From assembly GCF_000400465.1 (NCBI RefSeq), contig NW_008806283.1, positions 360,001 to 392,000 on the forward strand: a stretch of 32,000 bases of DNA, written 5' to 3'. Origin of the DNA: Wallemia ichthyophaga EXF-994. Taxonomy: Eukaryota; Fungi; Basidiomycota. This document shows positions 8,358 through 24,335 of this stretch, piece after piece (position 1 is the stretch's first letter; every line of letters begins with the position of its first letter). Below the pieces are notes generated by a model, which was given only the letters and a program-made list of their open reading frames with translations, was not told the origin of the DNA and made no database searches. Made by a program: the position numbers and the translations under genes.

Positions 8358-11300
8358 ATGTTCAAAGTGCGTTGGAATCGCAAGAAATCTGACCAAAAGA
8401 CACCGAGCTCACCAATAACACCATTACATCCCCTTAATGATAATTTAGAGTCACCTGCTCGCCAGAGCCTCTCTGATGGTGGTCTCCAACCAGTACCGCT
8501 TAATCATCCATCACCGAATTTCGTCAGTCCAATTAGTCCATCTGCGAATGCGATATTAGCTGATCAAGAGGATAAATATGACAATTGCCCTGTTTGCTTG
8601 GAGCCGCTTTCATTCTCGTTTAGACTTCCTGGTGAGTGATATCGTTGGGGATTCAATATCAAATTTAATTCAACGGCACAGGCGAGAAACCGCACATTGT
8701 ACCACTCTGTGGACACGCTTTACACGATCAGTGCTTCACCCAGGTCTATGGTCCTCTTCCTTCTGCTAAAATGCCTTCCAAGAGTCTGGGTGTGTGTGGA
8801 ATCTGCAGGAAGCCCATGAAACTATCTGATGACGCTGATGTACAATCCAATAAGAAAACGTCAAAAATCAATAAACTCGATAAACTCGCTGGGATCGCTT
8901 CTCCGCCGCTTGGACGCGATTTACAAACATCGCATTCCTCAAATAGCTTAAATAATCAATACGCGTCTTACACCTCTCAAGCCTCTTACGCGTCTTATCA
9001 AAAGAATAGCGCTGGTAGCGGTGGTAACTTTCAGTCTTCTCCATCAGATTCCCCTTCAGATCCACTAGATAGCTCCGCTGATGACGCTATACCAGCAGCA
9101 ACTACAAACAGCTCAAACACTTCAATATCAAATAACTCAAAGTCGTCTTACAACGAACTAGTCTCACCTAATATATCTATAAGGACGGAATTTAACGCTG
9201 CTATCCGACCACATATAGATCAAAAATCCGCCATTACCGCTATCGTTACAGTCGGTATTCCTTCAAGGCACTCTGACTCTGACCACGTTAAGAATTCGAA
9301 TCACCCTTCCTTAGTTAGATACCAAGAGCGTCATCATGCCTTATACGATAATGAGACATTTGCACCTTTAAACAGATCTGAAAGTAGAACTTCGGGGGAC
9401 AACACTTCTATTAGCTCATCTTCAAACTTTTCTACACAGGCGCAACCCGCTCAACCCACTCAACCCCAACAGACTAATTCAAAACCACTGAAGTCTGTTG
9501 CTTCAGATTTATATGCTAGGATACTCGATTGGAAGGGCAACAACCCCCACAGCTTCGGATCACTCTTGTTGTACTCACTTTGTCTGACTATACGGAGGTC
9601 GACGCAATCACAGACTGCGCAAGTTTTCTTGTTTGAAAACGCCCTGATTTGTGTCTCAGAGGACAGAAAAAGCGCACCCTTGAAAGATGGCAACAAGTCA
9701 CTCAAATTAAAAGGAAAAATTTATATATCGAATATAAGAAGGTGAGTCATGTTTCACCCTTTTTGAAGCCACACTGACAATCACACAGAGTTGTCTCAAT
9801 TGGTGATACAGGTCTCGTTTTGGAAACAGAAGCTGAAGATTTTCGTGACTTGACACTCATGTTCATTATGCGTGATGAGCGTGAACAGTGGAAATCTCAG
9901 TTCGATAAATTGATCTTTTCATCTGTCAACGTCCACCATCAATCGCAACCAGAACAGCAACCAGATTCACCTCAAATGTCTTTGCGTGATAGGGTTGAAA
10001 ACGATCGATCCGGTCGGCTTCTGTCACCGCAGACTGGCCCAAACCGTCAATCAATACAATCACCACACCAAACCAGTATGACTTCACCATCTTCATTCGG
10101 AGGTGTACCAATATCCCCAATGTCACTTCCTCACTCACCAAGGTCCACTCAGGCTAGCTCGATTGCGACATCAGGTGTATCTTCTAATCCATCAGACGTC
10201 TCGACATCAGCATTTGGAATGTCCTATGCGGCACCTGGCGATAACAAGGGTAGAGACTCGTTCAGATCATCGTTTCAGTTTACCGGCAATCCTCCAATTT
10301 TCAATGAGCAGAATTTAGCACCGCTCTCGCCACACGACGGTACGCTGTATCCCCATGCGCCAGCTGACATTGTGCTCATTTTGCCACTCCCTACATCTCA
10401 ACATGGCAGCCCAACACTCAAACTCAGGTTCTTAAAATCATCGTTGGAGTTTGTGATTAACAAGCTTGGTCATCGAGACAGAATTTGCGTTGTTACATTC
10501 AAGTCCATTCAGGGCGGAGCGTTGCGCAGAACGCCATTCATATCACCATCCTCCGTCAGCGGTAAGCAGAAGCTAAGTAGATTTTTGGAGACATTCGGGA
10601 GCAACTGGGAGGATTCAGTGTATGGGATAGACGGCGCAGTCGACCCATTCAAAGTCGGTACCAAAGATGACGAGAAAACAGATGTCGTGACGGCAATGAA
10701 CGCAGCCCTGGATGGAGTGTTGCAGAGAACAGCAAAAAATTCAGTCACAGGAATATTTCTCGTCAGCGATAATCAAGATCCAACGAGACGTGCGCAGATG
10801 GAATTGGTGTTGGCGCGCGCTGAAGCAGCCTCCGTACCAATACACACACTAGGTTGGAGTAGAGTGCACGATCCCTCTTCACTCTGGCTTCTCTCCTCAC
10901 ATACTGGTGGCACCTACACTTTCGTGAAGGAGTGGAACCAATTGAGGGACTGCATAGCTGGTGCTGTTGGTGGACTGTTCAGCGTTGCAGCCACAAACAT
11001 GAAGCTGCACATAAATGTCCTCGACTGGCCAATGATACGAGTGAGAAAGGTGTCACCATCTACATCAACCATAGTTTCCAACGAGGGTAATGAAGTACAT
11101 GTAGAGCTGGGTGAAATTCATTACGGTGAACAGAGAGAGTTGCTCGTCGAGATGGATCTCATCCACCCAATTAAAGCTACCATTGGCAGTTCGGGCCAAA
11201 ATACCAAACGGTTGTCGAGATACTCGGCGCAAGCCAACGTCAACTCAAATATTCAAGATGGATTGTCTGGTTTGAGTGTGGGTGAAACTATGTCAGACGC

Positions 11301-12039
11301 ATACGATGATATGATTGATGAGGTAAGTGATTACCATTTGTGGTGTTCTTGCGTGTGCAGTGTATTCTAACACGATATTCAACAGGCAGCTCTTTTTGAA
11401 GTTGATGCGTCATATCACGATCCAAATGTCGGTAGATCGGTCTCGCGTTTAGTGCAGCCAGTGCTGTTGACTATGACAATCTACCCTAATATCCAACCAG
11501 ACGCTCATACAACAATCGGCTCATCCCCAACCCTCATCTCCCAGCGTCTCAATGCAATACTCGGCAGTCCAGATGCTAAGGTGATAAGACGCAGGATGGA
11601 GTTGCTTTCATCGGATATGATAACACGCGCACTAATACTGATTTCGCGTAAAAATAACGTTCAAGCACAAAGATTACTCACTGAGACGGTACGTTTGGTG
11701 AGAATGGCTATAAGCAATCTAGTCAACTCCACGTCCTTCTCTCCGACTGTTAATTCACCATCAATGTCCATCACACCTAACAGATTCAAAAAGGATCATG
11801 GCATACTTAATACTGCCGATATACTCGAGGCTATTTTGTTTGAACTCGAGAGTTTACTTGAAGGATTGGAAGAGCACAAGGAAAATTTTGACCGCGAGCA
11901 GCGTAATCTTGGTGCTCAGCAAGCTATGATACTTAGAGATCAAAAGAGCTGGACTGGAAGAAGTCCAATCGAGAGGTTGTTCTGGAATTTTGATAATTCG
12001 AGAGCCTTGCTTGTCAAATCACTTGACTGGAATAAATAG
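8358..12039 (+). CDS. RING-H2 + PH + von Willebrand A domain protein (Ste5/Far1-like architecture), about 1173 aa
   Basis: Exons 8358-8631, 8682-9741, 9789-11322, 11386-12039; introns 50, 47 and 63 nt, all GT-AG and frame-preserving. The spliced RING-H2 reads CPVCLEPL..KPHIVPLCGHALHDQC..VCGICR. PH-like segment VFLFENALICV..LKLKGKIY. vWA segment PADIVLIL..LEFVINKLGHRDRICVVTF..IFLVSD..IHTLGW..SSHTGGTYTFV. Confidence 0.85.
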
Positions 12040-12076
12040 TCTGAAGTTTCTATATTATAGGCATATGGGAAAATTT

Positions 12077-12110
12077 CACGGACTAACGCAATACACGGAC
12101 CAACGCAATA
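12077..12110 (+). repeat. Tandem duplication of a 17-mer, CACGGAC(T/C)AACGCAATA x2, between convergent 3' ends
   Basis: 12077-12093 and 12094-12110 differ at one base. Confidence 0.8.
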
Positions 12111-12224
12111 AAACTACAAGTCGCTAACTTTGCTAAACTTTAATGAATATACTAAGCTCCTCTTTAATAATCGTGTTTACTTCTTAACATGTATATTTTC
12201 GATTTACATTTAATACAACCAAGT

Positions 12225-13415
12225 TTATAAGTTTATTTGAGATTGCATATCCTCATTGTAAGCGCCTTTGAGGGCGTTAGATACGCTAAGATCCGCCATA
12301 GCATAACGAGTTTCAACTGTCGAGCTTCCGATGTGAGGGAGGAGGAACACTTTGTCATTCTTTACGAGAGGGTGATTGCTGTCGATATGTGGTTCTCCTT
12401 CGATAACGTCTAAGCCAGCACCGGCAATGACATTCTCGTTGATAGCGTCGTTAAGTGCGTATGTGTCCTTTTGTGAGCGTTAGACAGTTGCTTTTACGCG
12501 AATGTTGGAATGCACCCACAATGAGCGGTCCTCTTGCAACGTTCACCACGAATGACGTCTTTTTCATATTGTTGAGGAAGTCTCTGTTGATGATGTGTTT
12601 CATATCTGCAGTCATGGCTGCGAGGAGGATGAGTGCATCTGAGTCTTGGGCGAGTGTGGAAAGATCGACGCGCTTAATTTCAATGTCGTACGTTTTTGAT
12701 AGCTCAGCATTTCTTGCGGATCTATCTGTACGTCCTAGGCTGGGTCAGTGGACTGAGAAAAGAGAGGGAGAAAGAAAGACACACCTGAGTCAGTGTAGAT
12801 GACTTTCTTGATTCCGAATGGAACAAGTCTGTGCATGGTAGCCTGTGCAATACGACCAAATCTAACAAAACACAAAGCAAGTCAAAGTCAGCTAGGATCG
12901 TGTGTTGATACTCCCCACACTCACCCCAAAAAACCGAGTGTCTTATTCTCGCTCAACTGTCCAGCCATGAGGAGTGGGCCCCAACCGACCTGTGGCCATT
13001 GATTTCTTTGAATAAAGGCAATTGACTCGCTAGCACGTCTGGCAGCGGCGAGATAAAGCAAGGCGCCAATTTCCGCAGTAGCGCTAGTGAGTAAGTCAGG
13101 AGTATTCGAAAGTCTCACATTGCGCTCTTTCAGCTGAGCCAAATCACAGTGGTCCACTCCGACAGACATGGTGCTGATTGCTTTGAGATTAGTGCCTGCT
13201 TTATCGAGCAGCTCTTTGTCAACCTTATCGCTTAGCATTACTAGGAGAGCGTCTGCACCGCTGACATTATCGAGCAGCCATTCTCTGGGGGCCGGAGTGT
13301 CCGTCTCCCAGCAAGTCAGATTCACAGGCCTGGATTGGAATTTTGCCATAATTTCAGGCATTAGTGGACGTGTGAGCACTATTTTAGGTATATTCAAGGT
13401 GCCTGCGATGCGCAT
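12225..13415 (-). CDS. GOR1: Glyoxylate/hydroxypyruvate reductase (D-isomer 2-hydroxyacid dehydrogenase)
   Basis: Exons 13415-12925, 12861-12785, 12734-12520, 12467-12225; introns 63, 50 and 52 nt. Motifs: STMSVGVDH, NTPDLLTSATAE, Rossmann GFLGFGRIA (spans intron 1), VVNVARGPLI, GAGLDVIEGEP, LPHIGSST. The catalytic Arg, Glu and His are present. Confidence 0.93.
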
Positions 13416-13489
13416 GTCGTTGTAAAATGATAAGGAGTTGGGCGTGGTGCAAGCACAAGTACAAGCCTGGATTTAGTGTGCTGGACTGC

Positions 13490-14088
13490 TCAGACCACTC
13501 TGCCTACAATGTTGTAGCGCTTGCTAAAGAATTTAAACCAATCTGAGCAGTGTTAGATAAGCGGCTGCTGCGCTAACCCCCACACACCGTCAAGCACAGA
13601 AGATTCCTTCTCTGTGAGAGTACTGTAGTCCGCAACAGCGTCTTCCGGATTCAAGCTGCTCATCCCCAGCCCTCTGCTACCGTCCTTGCCCTGGAACGGG
13701 ATGTCAGCCAATGACGCTACCGTGATTAGGCAACAGTACAGCGAAAATATTGTATGACTTGCCGCTGCCGTACATGTCAGCCTTCTTGGTCACATCGAAT
13801 ACCGTCCCTTTGATTGCGACGTATATTGGCTTATCGTTGCTGCCGTCGTGCATGCTCAACTCCGCGGCGCTGATAGGCGTGTCCTTTGGTGGATCTAGTT
13901 GGGCTGCTGGTGCTTGCATGGGCTAGTATTATGTTAGCTGGTAGCGCGAAAAATGGCACGCAGCGCACACTCTTGTTATCGTCCTCAGATGGTTCTAAAG
14001 CAAGGTGAGAATCAGTTTATGATTTGAGCAGACCTTAATTCTCACCCTGGCCTGCGAAATAACTCTTTACACTATCGAAGAATCCCAT
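13490..14088 (-). CDS. Cytochrome b5-like heme/steroid-binding protein (MAPR/Dap1 family), soluble type
   Basis: Five exons: 14088-14046, 13994-13969 (26-nt microexon), 13922-13740, 13690-13588, 13542-13490; introns 51, 46, 49 and 45 nt. Protein MGFFDSVKSYFAGQEPSEDDNKSPMQAP..IYVAIKGTVFDVT..YGSGKSYNIFAGKDGSRGLGMSSL..DWFKFFSKRYNIVGRVV carries MAPR motifs. Confidence 0.92.
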
Positions 14089-14117
14089 CGATGTAACCAG
14101 ACAAGAATGATGCATAT

Positions 14118-15744
14118 CTAGAATCCATTTACAGTTTCTGCTCCAACGCGCGCTATCACGTGAAATGCTTTATCGACGTGTTTTTCCTTTGTTTGAGGAC
14201 ATCCGCATACGAATCTGACACAATATACACCATTCACCGCGGTATGCGTGAGACTGAGCTCGTTTCTATGTGCAACAAGATTGCTATAGAATTTCCTGTT
14301 TAGCTCATTCACTGAACTGATTTCACTCCCTTCCCCACCTCGCAAACGAAAGACAGTAAGTGACAAACGGGGTTTACACACCAACTCAAACCTCCCATCC
14401 GATTTCAAAAGCTGTCTAAATCTCTCCCCAAGCTCTATAGAGCGGCGTATATGTTCTCTGAACCCCTCCACTCCGTATGACTTGAGCATAAAGTATATCT
14501 TGGGACTCGAGAAGTGTCGTCCGAGACCTATAATGCAGTCCTTGAAGTCAAGCACCTGTCCAGAGTCTGTGGCTTTATTGCGCAGGTATTCCGGCGTGAT
14601 TGTCAGAGCATCCGTTATTGACCTGAGGTCACGAACGAAGAATGCAACGGTAGACATGCTAACTAAGCCCATCTGAGAGTGGAGGGTGTAAAGTGTAGAG
14701 TGTCAGCGGATGATATACCACATAAGGACAAACACCCACCTTATGCATACCTATATTGATAGAATCCGCGTACTGATTTATAGCGGCCAGCATCAATTCG
14801 TCGCGCACCTCTGGGACAGCGAGGTGAGTACCAGCCCAAGCGGCGTCGATGTGCATCCACAGCCGATTCTGTCTGGCGACAGAGCCTACGCTGTCGACCG
14901 AGTCAACCGCACCAGTGCTCGTCGTACCTACAGTTGCAACAACAATGAAAGGCACAAGACCATTCTGGCGGTCCTCCGCCACCGCACGCGCCACTGCCTC
15001 GCCAGTGAGTGCCAGCTCGGTCTCTGCGCTCACCTCCAAAAGGCGTATGCGGAGATTGAGCACGCGGGCTGCCTTGCTTGCGGAGGAATGTGTTTGGGTT
15101 GACGCATACACCACCAGACGAGACTGATCGCGCGTTTCATTTTCGTGCAAATACTTTTCTCTCGCTGCAGTCACAGCTACCAGGATAGACTCACTGGAGC
15201 TGGCCTGTACAACTCCGCCTCCAGCTCCCCTCCGGAAGTGGTGGAAGGTGTCTTGCAATCCGAATAAATTTGCCAGCCAGTCCATCACTTGTAACTCGAG
15301 CTCTGAGCACGGATTTGAGTCCCAGCTGAATCCTGGATTGTTGATTGAAGATATCAGCATTTCGCTAAGCATCGACTCAAATGAGGTGTTCGCGGGGAAG
15401 TAGTGGAATGCGCTTGGATGCTGCCAGTGGTTGAGACCTGGCAAAACTACATCTCTAAACTCATCCTGTATTTCACCAAATGACGTGCCGCGATTTGGAG
15501 GTGCGTCTACGTAGCATCAACGATGGTGCTTTGACAGCTGCCAACACACACGCACCAGCTATTGCTCCCCTAAGATACCCAGGCTTGACATCTGACTGGA
15601 CTGCTATCGACGATGGATCGTCTCTGAGCGACTTGTAGTAGTTGTAGATCCTATCAACTGTCCTAAAGCACAATGAGCTCAGTTTTTACCATCCAACACA
15701 CATCCTAACTCGTATCCGTTTCGCTTGAACTCCTCGAGATCCAT
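14118..15744 (-). CDS. DDC: Aromatic-L-amino-acid decarboxylase family (group II PLP decarboxylase), 487 aa
   Basis: Exons 15744-15710, 15662-15556, 15506-14740, 14672-14118; introns 47, 49 and 67 nt. Motifs: MDLEEFKRNGY, VKPGYLR, LPGLNHWQHP..FHYFPAN, ELE..VMDWL, QTHSS, GTTSTGAVD, HIDAAWAG, MHK (PLP lysine), TPEYLR, LGR. Confidence 0.92.
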
Positions 15745-15924
15745 TTGATGACAAGATGAAACGGAAATCGACAGCAGTCAGACACAGCCAGACGCATTAT
15801 AGCACATACGACACACGCAAATTTAAAGAAATGAAATTCGAGTTTGACAAGGGAAAAGGTGGAGAATATAATTAAGAATGTTCAATGCTTTCAAAGGTCA
15901 ACATGGCGTATTCGTTGAGTTAAA

Positions 15925-17078
<1,154 letters not shown>

Positions 17079-18270: not shown

Positions 18271-20070
18271 ATGCCTTTATCAAAGCACATCAACACTGAG
18301 AAACTCATTTCTGATTCACGCGATGACGCCAGAAGCCTCGTAGAAAGGGCATCCGGTGAAGAAGCTCGAAAGTACACCTCTAGAAGATACGGTCAAGCGC
18401 CTCTTCCTAAGGTTGGTGCTATTTGCCTTTAGTTTTGTATAAATGCTCACACTCCATAGTACGAATTCCCCTCTACCGGTGTCGATGATAATGTCGCGTA
18501 CCAGCTCATTCACGACGAGCTAAATGGTGACAGTACACCATTCCTCAATCTCGCGTCATTCGTCACCACTCGAATGTCCTCTTTGGGGCAAAAGTTGGTT
18601 GATGAAAATATCAACAAGAACATTGCAGACCAGGACCAATACAAGTCTTCATTTGAGCTGCAGAACCGTGTTATAAGCATGATGTCAGACCTATGGAAAG
18701 TTCCAAAGGACGGCTCCTGCTCAGCTGTCGGTACCGTGACCGCTGGATCAAGTGAAGGGCTTCTTATGGGCGTTTTGGCTTTGAAAAAGCTCTGGCAAGG
18801 CAAAGTAATAGCAGAGAATGCTGCGCTTGAATCTGCGCAAGCAAATAGTCAAAATGTCTCAAATACGACACCTGCTACACAAAAGCATAAAACCCCACGC
18901 AGCTTCAAAGAACCAGGTGGAAATATGATTTTCGCGTCATCTGCTCATTGCTGCGTAGAGAAGGCTGCCAGATATTTCGACTTGGAAGCGAGAATCGTCC
19001 CAATAGGCGAAAAAAGCTCTGAAAAAGGTGAAGGTAGCCGTTACACTCTTGATCCCGAAGCAATTCCGGACCTTGTGGATGAGAATACCATCGGAGTGGT
19101 AGTCATCGCAGGCAGTACATATACAGGCCACATTGAGGACGTCATTGGTGTGAACAAAGTGTTAGATAGAGTCCAAAAAGAGCGTGGATTCGACATTCCT
19201 ATCCACGTAGATGCTGCCTCAGGTGGATTCGTCCTGCCATTTGCTTTCCCTAAGCACAAGTGGGCATTTGACGTACCTCGCGTTCACTCCATAAACAGCT
19301 CAGGTCATAAATACGGTTAGCAGGATGTTAAAATTGGCTGAAATTCTCACTGACGATACTAAGGTGGTACATACGTTGGCTCAGGTATCGTCATCTGGAA
19401 AGACGAGAAGCTCTTACCGAAGGAGCTCGTATTCGAAATGCACTATCTTGGTTCAACTGAGCTTTCATTCACGCTCAATTTCTCGCGTCCAGCAGCTCCA
19501 GTGATTGCGCAATACTACAACTTTATTAATCTAGGCTATGAAGGTTACTGTTCGATCTTGCAAAATGACTTTTCTAATGCGCGTATTCTCGCACGTGCCC
19601 TCGAAAAAAGCGGCTACTTCGAGGTGCTATCTGACAATCATCGCCTCGATCCCAACAGCGATGTCAAGGATAACCAGCTCGCTGAAGCATACGCACCTTC
19701 TCTCCCAGTCGTTGCCTTTAGATGGACCGACAAGTTCAGAGAAGAACACCCTTACCTCGAGCAGAAATGGGTGCAAATTTTGATGAAGACAAAGGGTTGG
19801 ATCTTGCCAAATTATGGAATGAGTGAGAACTTGACATCTGTAGAGATTATCAGAGCAGTAATGAGAGAGGAGATGAGTGAAGACATGCTAGACATCCTCG
19901 TGAAGGACCTCATTGAAGTGCAAGAAGCGCTCACGGACGACAGCTCTGACTTTTATAAACTCGCTCTCACCAGCTCGGGCAAAAAGCCATCTACAAAGCA
20001 ACCCTCTGAAGATACACGTGAGGAAAAGAAAGAAGATGATGCTCACCAAGGCTACTCGCGTCCATGCTAA
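18271..20070 (+). CDS. GAD1: Glutamate decarboxylase (group II PLP decarboxylase), 567 aa
   Basis: Exons 18271-18411, 18460-19315, 19364-20070; both introns 48 nt. Motifs: AYQLIHDEL, NLASFVTT, TAGSSEG, IHVDAASGGFVLPF, INSSGHKYG (PLP lysine), FTLNFSRPAA, QYYNFINLGYEGY. Confidence 0.93.
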
Positions 20071-23854: not shown

Positions 23855-23914
23855 GATGATGGTATCGCGTCAAGGGTAATTTGGCAGGCTATAATGGCCA
23901 GCACACAAAAGCAT

Positions 23915-24277: not shown

Positions 24278-24335
24278 CGTCGTCGTCGCTGTTCAGCAGA
24301 ATTCCTTGATCCAAAACGACCACCAACTTGAAATT
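24278..24335. promoter_or_regulatory. 58-bp head-to-head intergenic region
   Basis: ATG 24277 (-) and ATG 24336 (+). Confidence 0.55.

Follow-up and report, generated by a model that had tools for sequence, protein, structure and literature searches.

Background

In microsporidia, transcripts begin in upstream genes or end in downstream genes (Williams 2005, Corradi 2008, as cited in PMC3629993). In Agaricomycetes, polycistronic units were described whose genes are independently transcribed too (Gordon et al. 2015, PMC4503453). In nematodes, tunicates and kinetoplastids, operons resolved by spliced leaders (SL) consist of tandem same-strand genes that are at most about 100 bp apart and are co-transcribed. 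We describe here a comparable locus within a 32,000-nucleotide stretch (the window) of scaffold KE007233.1 from the salt-loving fungus Wallemia ichthyophaga EXF-994. It consists of three minus-strand genes, which encode a decarboxylase of the aromatic amino acid decarboxylase type (AADC), a cytochrome-b5-like protein (b5) and a D-2-hydroxyacid dehydrogenase (the reductase). We assign a probability of roughly 0.65 to the explanation that these are three independent, intron-containing genes brought head to tail by genome compaction, whose transcription units overlap and are probably nested.

The locus shares with microsporidia, to the extent that they are portrayed in the cited source, short spacers, multigene RNAs and an overlap of transcripts whatever the orientation of the genes; in Wallemia these traits appear in L009, a contig from a related species. 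Unlike microsporidia as described there, Wallemia is a free-living basidiomycete with a 9.6-Mb genome, whose genes average about 3.8 exons and have normal spliceosomal introns, and its overlap is read from that one short-read contig and not from mapped transcript ends. As in Agaricomycetes, the genes form adjacent same-strand, complete and non-overlapping open reading frames (ORFs) in a member of the Basidiomycota, and spliced RNA, here in the form of a contig, covers two or more of them. However, the Agaricomycete study used single-molecule reads and judged the feature likely to be restricted to that class, whereas Wallemia is known here from a short-read contig and the Wallemiomycetes lie outside the Agaricomycetes (PMC4503453). 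In contrast to SL-resolved operons, the L009 spacers are collinear with genomic DNA and free of any leader. The locus is neither an SL-type nor a bacterial-type operon. The closest known phenomena are the overlapping expression of compacted genomes and the Agaricomycete polycistronic units, and the locus is thus of a known kind.

Probable overlapping transcription units

Window coordinates were taken from the sequence itself and confirmed by splicing and translating the gene models. Positions in the reference annotation locus (L003) were converted by using window position = 25745 minus L003 position. A second W. ichthyophaga strain (L002) is 99.74% identical to the window across 15.5 kb, and the syntenic genomic locus of W. 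mellicola (L001) was used for comparison. The main features, apart from the b5 exons, are as follows.

14118-15744, minus strand: AADC-type pyridoxal phosphate (PLP)-dependent decarboxylase gene, 487 amino acids; exons 15744-15710, 15662-15556, 15506-14740 and 14672-14118 (stop included)
14089-14117, minus strand: spacer from AADC stop to b5 ATG, 29 bp; holds an upstream in-frame ATG (14115-14113)
13416-13489, minus strand: spacer from b5 stop to reductase ATG, 74 bp, 51% A+T, ATG-free
12225-13415, minus strand: GRHPR-type D-2-hydroxyacid dehydrogenase gene, 341 amino acids; exons 13415-12925, 12861-12785, 12734-12520 and 12467-12225
12040-12224, unstranded: convergent spacer between the reductase and PH_10 genes, 185 bp, A+T-rich (69% overall)

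A first-pass annotation, made from the sequence alone, had delimited these genes, and all of its coordinates are correct. The AADC stop (TAG, 14120-14118) is followed 29 nt downstream by the b5 ATG at 14088, the b5 stop (TGA, 13492-13490) lies 74 nt before the reductase ATG at 13415, and 180 nt separate the stop of the upstream PP1 gene (15925) from the AADC ATG (15744). The ATG at 14115, 2 nt past the AADC stop, shares the frame of 14088, and no stop intervenes (MHHSCLVTS-MGFF...). The AADC and b5 frames differ (32-nt offset), as had been stated, which leaves no room for a read-through fusion. The proposed gene identities agree with the Pfam domains that are present, namely Pyridoxal_deC, Cyt-b5 and 2-Hacid_dh/2-Hacid_dh_C.

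The L009 contig provides the RNA evidence. It is a 6816-nt de Bruijn contig assembled from short reads of a related Wallemia (run SRR23314750) and is 93% identical to W. mellicola. Because 13 of its 13 internal introns are precisely removed, L009 is derived from RNA. It comprises the 3' part of AADC, a 58-nt spacer, b5, a 22-nt spacer and the reductase, plus PH_10, which is convergent and lies on the opposite strand. In this RNA the three ORFs of AADC, b5 and the reductase are separate, and each keeps its own stop. The RNA is unbroken across both spacers, the reductase and PH_10 RNAs merge in their 3' region, and the contig extends about 80 nt into the coding sequence (CDS) of the upstream kinase, past the PH_10 ATG. 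Since L009 also joins a gene on the opposite strand, neighbouring transcripts overlap irrespective of strand, and contig continuity is therefore no proof that single molecules span several ORFs. The first-pass annotation had reasoned that the gap upstream of b5 is too short for separate units, so that they either overlap or are polycistronic. This dilemma stands, and L009 is continuous over both spacers with its introns removed.

The spacing of the surrounding genes argues that the triplet is not exceptional. In window order, the 12 CDS-to-CDS spacers are as follows.

Spacers 1 to 4: 117 bp divergent; 179 bp tandem; 90 bp tandem; 185 bp convergent
Spacers 5 to 8: 74 bp tandem (b5 to reductase); 29 bp tandem (AADC to b5); 180 bp tandem (PP1 to AADC); 1192 bp divergent
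Spacers 9 to 12: 219 bp convergent; 60 bp tandem; 58 bp divergent; 255 bp convergent

Five of the 12 measure 90 bp or less, among them those of one divergent pair (58 bp) and two tandem pairs (60 and 90 bp) of unrelated genes, and the 29-bp spacer is the shortest without being an outlier. The syntenic spacers of W. mellicola include 39 (convergent), 54 (divergent), 57, 22, 107 and 96 (divergent) bp. The homologues of the AADC-b5 and b5-reductase spacers measure 57 and 22 nt in W. mellicola, as compared with 58 and 22 nt in L009. Neither the two spacers of the window nor their W. mellicola homologues have room for a 3' UTR, a terminator, a promoter and a 5' UTR. The genome of W. ichthyophaga, at 9.6 Mb, carries 514 genes per Mb and is about 72% CDS (PMC3849046, PMC6738226); from these published figures we estimate a mean CDS-to-CDS spacer of about 0.4 kb. 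Spacers too short for a UTR, a terminator and a promoter, the mark of compaction, are found in both Wallemia genomes. The triplet had been singled out as operon-like, and this special status is lost, because short spacers of 22-117 bp in all orientations are common around the locus in both genomes. If a tandem spacer of 29 bp counts as "impossible", so does a divergent one of 58 bp, and the triplet thus represents the tight end of a genome-wide condition. Its tight packing is best explained by genome compaction and is not an exception. Homologues of these genes elsewhere are stand-alone, and W. mellicola has three separate ORFs.

If the three transcription units overlap, each protein would have a capped mRNA of its own and be translated from the 5'-proximal ORF there, and the start site of each mRNA would lie in the tiny spacer or in the 3' part of the upstream gene. 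The start site of the reductase mRNA would probably be within b5 exon 4, intron 4 or exon 5, and that of the b5 mRNA probably no more than about 25 nt from its ATG, or in the 3' end of AADC. Transcripts of upstream genes would run into or through the downstream genes, plausibly as far as the A+T-rich region past the reductase. Dicistronic and tricistronic RNAs would thus probably exist structurally, as by-products of compaction and not as operon-type templates for the downstream ORFs.

Two sequence features are consistent with such start and end sites. A 245-nt ATG-free run precedes the reductase ATG (13416-13660, minus strand) and takes in the spacer together with b5 exon 5, intron 4 and some of exon 4. 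It ranks among the top 1.4% of ATG-free runs on the minus strand and weakly hints that the reductase mRNA starts within b5. Over the first 100 nt past the stop, A+T content is 60% for AADC and 51% for b5, with no classical poly(A) motifs, whereas the first 100 nt past the reductase stop are 75% A+T and contain three ATTAAA motifs. The convergent spacer at 12040-12224 is the only classical-looking 3'-end region of the triplet, and this weakly suggests a shared 3' end.

Several points weigh against three overlapping but independent units. A short-read contig cannot tell overlapping monocistronic RNAs from true polycistronic molecules, and the RNA evidence is one such contig, from a related Wallemia and not W. 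ichthyophaga. The arguments from poly(A) motifs and from the ATG-free run are weak, since fungal 3'-end signals are degenerate. Spacers of 22-29 bp have stayed tiny between two species whose proteins are 65-80% identical, which selection for co-transcription would fit as well. Finally, all three taxa have an upstream ATG at a distance of 24-37 nt from the b5 start, and this is awkward if the b5 5' UTR begins inside AADC.

These points bear on the alternative that a single mRNA, either AADC-b5-reductase or b5-reductase, is a true functional polycistron and serves as the main template, with its downstream ORFs translated by re-initiation, leaky scanning or internal entry. The close spacing in both species (29 and 74 bp in the window, for which W. 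mellicola has 57 and 22 bp), the continuity of the spliced L009 RNA and the placement of the first classical A+T-rich 3'-end region only after the reductase would all fit a polycistron. The continuity is explained by overlap alone, however, because L009 merges the convergent gene too. Polycistronic transcripts are documented in Agaricomycetes, but the genes there are also independently transcribed and translation of the downstream ORFs was not shown (PMC4503453).

Translation presents a further difficulty for a polycistron. In cap-dependent scanning, re-initiation is not efficient after an ORF of 487 codons, and it would be inefficient after the 135 codons of b5 as well; several internal AUGs in the b5 ORF exclude leaky scanning to the reductase. 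Both L009 spacers (58 and 22 nt) follow the genomic DNA of W. mellicola collinearly, and no foreign spliced leader was found in them; SL trans-splicing is not known in fungi. The first-pass annotation had proposed that the TAG-AT-ATG arrangement at the AADC stop is compatible with re-initiation. In W. mellicola, however, the upstream ATG is 21 nt past the stop, and in L009 it is out of frame owing to a 1-nt indel; the added peptide is not conserved. Because distance, frame and peptide all vary, the arrangement is fortuitous. We therefore consider a functional polycistron unlikely.

A broader version of this idea is that Wallemiomycetes routinely use conserved dicistronic or tricistronic mRNAs, or nested mRNAs with a common 3' end. 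In that case b5 would lack its own terminator, and its main mRNA would be a b5-reductase bicistron. Ribosomes might even begin at internal positions to translate the downstream ORFs. We regard this as doubtful, if slightly less so than a functional polycistron. If it were true, a free-living fungus with a 9.6-Mb genome would offer a tractable model for eukaryotic gene expression across spacers of 20-30 bp. Likewise, if spanning molecules exist, they would extend polycistronic transcripts beyond the Agaricomycetes. Spacers of 22-74 bp that have been kept between intron-containing genes over a long divergence provide a convenient locus, in a compact free-living fungus, for testing the placement of start sites and poly(A) sites.

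The upstream ATG is at 14113-14115 in the window, at 9798-9800 in L001 and at about 1369-1371 in L009. It sits in a partly conserved ATGC..TC.TTCTT motif, which may mark a leader or a start-site element.

The first 41 nt of L009 (positions 1-41) are retained sequence of AADC intron 2. Pre-mRNA that was not spliced, poor coverage at the 5' end or an internal start could account for this stretch, and because of it the AADC ORF of the contig is called only as a 389-residue partial. A metagenome scan for further Wallemia species returned only a locus with 43% identity.

Start codon of the b5 gene

The choice of the b5 start decides whether the 29-bp gap exists, because the gap would be 198 bp if translation began at the internal Met 13919. 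The best b5 model has five exons from 14088 and encodes 135 amino acids.

14046-14088, minus strand: exon 1 (MGFFDSVKSYFAGQ plus 1 nt), with GTGAGA as the donor; also in model EOR00801.1
13969-13994, minus strand: exon 2, 26 nt (EPSEDDNKS), supported by conservation and L009 junctions
13740-13922, minus strand: exon 3 (PMQAPAAQLDPPKD...NIFA), in which Met 13919 is the start of the short homologues; its acceptor is the first AG past a CTAAC branch site
13588-13690, minus strand: exon 4, supported by splicing and translation and by L009
13490-13542, minus strand: exon 5 (DWFKFFSKRYNIVGRVV plus stop); the C-terminus is conserved across all homologues

The start at 14088 given in the first-pass annotation is upheld, because the two mini-exons are conserved in W. 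mellicola and are spliced in the related-Wallemia RNA. Exon 1 is conserved in W. mellicola (MGIFDTIKGIFGGDS) with a length difference of 3 nt. Exon 2 has 78% nucleotide identity to W. mellicola, as compared with 48-60% for the flanking introns, and is 26 nt long there too; in L009 it is 23 nt long owing to an in-frame 3-nt deletion. The encoded N-terminal peptides are MGFFDSVKSYFAGQEPSEDDNKSP-MQAP in the window and MGIFDTIKGIFGGDSKPSSEDNKSV-MQPP in W. mellicola, which conform to the pattern MG[FI]FD[ST][VI]K...KS[PV]MQ. Their "KS-x-MQ" junction resembles the "KSIMQ" linker of the long, transmembrane-bearing paralogues of Agaricomycetes. Both junctions of exon 2 are present in the L009 RNA, exon 1 is spliced in as well, and the b5 ORF of L009 is open throughout, from MGIFDTIK... 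to ...NIVGRVV*; a cluster look-up identified its product as the 135-residue Logan protein P0376. The fact that this RNA-derived ORF is in frame from the upstream Met into the domain is decisive for a start at 14088.

Alternatively, b5 might start at Met 13919 (MQAP...), with the upstream mini-exons representing a spliced 5' leader, an upstream ORF or a minor isoform. The 111-residue W. mellicola protein EIM21903.1 and more than 12 short basidiomycete homologues begin exactly at the equivalent Met, which is the point that speaks against 14088, and this Met is kept even within the long transmembrane-bearing paralogues (KSIMQ). Two nonsynonymous single-nucleotide polymorphisms (SNPs) within the 26-nt exon 2 separate the W. 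ichthyophaga strains, which would also fit this reading. However, exon lengths vary between species in multiples of 3 only, as against differences of 28, 3 and 2 nt for the introns and the spacer. In addition, the N-terminal peptide is conserved up to a linker typical of the long forms, and the unspliced DNA has in-frame stops directly upstream of 13919, so that a frame-preserving splice is unlikely to be accidental. Together with the L009 frame, these observations make an exclusive start at 13919 improbable. A short model starting only there was initially favoured on the basis of the homologue alignment and was dropped in view of the W. mellicola conservation and the RNA contig. With 14088 as the start, an additional short isoform from 13919 may be produced.

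Other candidates were rejected. Alternative intron 2 acceptors (AAG at 13913 and CAG at 13907) are wrong, the real junction being donor 13968 to acceptor 13923 according to the reference model and L009. For W. mellicola exon 1, the donor GTGATA was discarded because L009 uses GTCAGT, 9 nt further downstream. Intron-position homology with long-form MAPR genes is uninformative, as the phase-0 intron of Vanrija is displaced by 3 codons and Coprinopsis lacks one. N-myristoylation (MG...) was likewise dropped: W. mellicola fits the PROSITE-type pattern, and W. ichthyophaga is excluded by Phe at position 3.

The exon 2 SNPs change DN to EI (window 13969-13994 versus L002 7751-7776) in strains that differ by just 0.26% overall, a sign of weak constraint on the linker. 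In "MQ(A/P)P", the Met (13917-13919) is internal in long MAPR paralogues and is the annotated start of short ones across Basidiomycota. This pattern could reflect either dual initiation, with one form anchored and the other soluble, or annotations that are widely truncated at the N-terminus.

Gene order and function

A functional link among the three enzymes had been raised, as inference only. The order PP1, AADC, b5, reductase is indeed kept within Wallemia, but the linkage is absent from four other basidiomycete loci: the two b5 paralogues of Coprinopsis and the homologues in Ustilago and Vanrija lie next to unrelated genes, with neither AADC nor 2-Hacid_dh among their neighbours. Moreover, the whole 20-kb neighbourhood, including ATG11, the second decarboxylase, PP1, PH_10 and the kinase, is collinear between W. 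ichthyophaga and W. mellicola, so the adjacency of AADC, b5 and the reductase is not specific evidence.

This weakens the possibility of a co-regulated metabolic cluster, in which the genes would be transcribed separately and kept adjacent by one pathway (aromatic amine formation, P450 support and keto-acid reduction). Such a cluster would account for a gene order common to W. ichthyophaga, W. mellicola and the L009 taxon, and the plant hydroxyphenylpyruvate reductase 3BA1 is among the solved relatives of the reductase (3e-38). Yet the best match of the reductase is a generic GRHPR (8e-65), and MAPR proteins are general P450 partners, with no P450 gene nearby. With the collinearity and the four unlinked loci also against it, we find a metabolic cluster quite improbable. 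There is no evidence for a shared pathway or functional coupling among the three enzymes.

Chimeric gene models in public annotations

Public annotations merge these genes. The 488-residue protein EOR00801.1 ("Glyoxylate reductase/hydroxypyruvate reductase"), which is the same as XP_009268514.1 and UniProt R9AL84, was reconstructed exactly from the window. In this model, b5 exons 1-4 and a truncated exon 5 are joined across a 41-nt "intron" to 17 amino acids of translated spacer and then the whole reductase.

13467-13507, minus strand: 41-nt pseudo-intron of EOR00801.1, which deletes the last 5 b5 codons and the stop, so that GRVV is lost; judged an artefact

In the strain genomes of 2019, AADC, b5 and the reductase are fused in 845-residue models (e.g., TIB68735.1) and in one 581-residue model. 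The gene range of the 845-residue model is exactly 12225-15744, and the model omits 78 C-terminal AADC residues together with b5 exons 1 and 5. An exact look-up of the separate b5 (135 and 111 amino acids) and reductase (341 amino acids) proteins in the protein collection found none.

The presence of these models in GenBank and UniProt could be taken to mean that the 488-residue b5-reductase or the 845-residue AADC-b5-reductase is a real protein. However, both annotations were produced without RNA evidence, by GeneMark-ES and by MAKER with protein evidence only (PMC3849046, PMC6738226), and both discard conserved sequence. Every stop is retained in the L009 RNA. Also, W. mellicola has three separate genes, and the 22-nt spacer there cannot hold a 41-nt intron. 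Real fusions are thus extremely improbable, and EOR00801.1 and the triple fusions of 845 and 581 residues are prediction chimeras, artefacts of tight spacing.

These results correct the records EOR00801.1/R9AL84, the 845- and 581-residue fusions, and EIM21903.1 of W. mellicola, which lacks its 25-residue N-terminus. The MAKER annotations of 2019 contain about 4188 gene models, as compared with 4884 in the reference (PMC6738226). This drop suggests that neighbours were merged widely and that many "missing" genes are merged ones. Widespread merging would distort pan-genome and orthology counts.

Encoded proteins

The AADC model, after splicing and translation, is identical residue for residue to GenBank EOR00802.1 ("Tyrosine decarboxylase 1"). 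Its match to Pfam Pyridoxal_deC (1e-99) covers domain positions 1-375 of 375, and it aligns over its full length to the solved plant tyrosine decarboxylase 6EEI (3e-102). The PLP-binding Lys motif (N-x-H-K) is present as SINIGMHK. As judged from its sequence, the gene is a member of the group II PLP-dependent decarboxylase family, of the putative aromatic amino acid type.

AADC is 65% identical to its W. mellicola counterpart. Among the matches listed, the best outside Wallemia have at most 42% identity and are mostly bacterial or metagenomic decarboxylases, with few fungi (Meira, 38%). Horizontal origin or fast evolution could explain this divergence, and the match list may be biased. An extra 45-nt intron is present in the last AADC exon of W. 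mellicola (L001 9327-9371) and of the L009 taxon, and W. ichthyophaga is without it; the intron was therefore gained or lost within the genus.

The b5 protein matches Pfam PF00173 Cyt-b5 (1.5e-10). Among solved proteins it is related to the MAPR members At2g24940 and PGRMC1, and its best PDB matches are 1J03/1T0G (2e-25) and PGRMC1 4X8Y (9e-16). The 135-residue sequence lacks the classical HPGG heme ligand motif and has the conserved Tyr of YxxFAG, with SYNIFAGKDGSRGL aligned to the MAPR structures. The protein shares the cytochrome-b5-like fold of the MAPR family (yeast Dap1, human PGRMC1, Arabidopsis MSBP/At2g24940) and contains the YxxFAGxDxSRGL and C-terminal KY/RYxxVG motifs of that family. 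Unlike most long forms of basidiomycetes, which have an N-terminal transmembrane anchor, it begins with a hydrophilic to amphipathic peptide of 24 amino acids that is encoded by the two mini-exons. No hydrophobic segment of 18-20 amino acids, and hence no transmembrane anchor of the kind seen in the Agaricomycete long forms, is found in this N-terminus (MGFFDSVKSYFAGQEPSEDDNKSP). The b5 protein is thus predicted to be an anchor-free, MAPR/Dap1-type cytochrome-b5-like protein.

The reductase contains both Pfam domains, 2-Hacid_dh and 2-Hacid_dh_C, and matches human GRHPR (2GCG) end to end. Its catalytic Arg, Glu and His residues are aligned with those of 2GCG: NVARG, GEP and PHIGS with SRG, PEP and PHIGS. 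The enzyme is accordingly predicted to be of the glyoxylate/hydroxypyruvate-reductase (GRHPR) type. A protein search with the reductase returned no Wallemia protein among the matches listed. The introns of the gene models are 45-67 nt long, with GT..AG ends and branch sites resembling CTAAC or CTGAC.

Neighbouring genes

The remaining features of the locus are listed below. An Rfam scan of the window produced zero matches.

15925-17078, minus strand: PP1 catalytic subunit gene, 328 amino acids, the upstream same-strand neighbour; converted from L003 8667-9820, with Pfam STPPase_N and Metallophos, and present in the ORF list
15925-15927, minus strand: PP1 stop codon, converted from the reference annotation
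15745-15924, minus strand: spacer from PP1 stop to AADC ATG, 180 bp, 62% A+T, read from the sequence
8358-12039, plus strand: PH_10 gene, convergent to the reductase and adjacent to the 185-bp spacer

A second PLP-decarboxylase paralogue of 567 amino acids (18271-20070, plus strand) is divergent from PP1 across 1192 bp, the largest spacer in the window. A paralogue of 531 amino acids is found at the equivalent place in W. mellicola.

The 58-bp divergent spacer (24278-24335) separates a gene encoding 103 amino acids from one for an RRM protein, and the 60-bp tandem spacer (23855-23914) lies between the same 103-residue gene and ATG11, which is downstream. At both spacers, promoters and UTRs must sit within the neighbouring genes.

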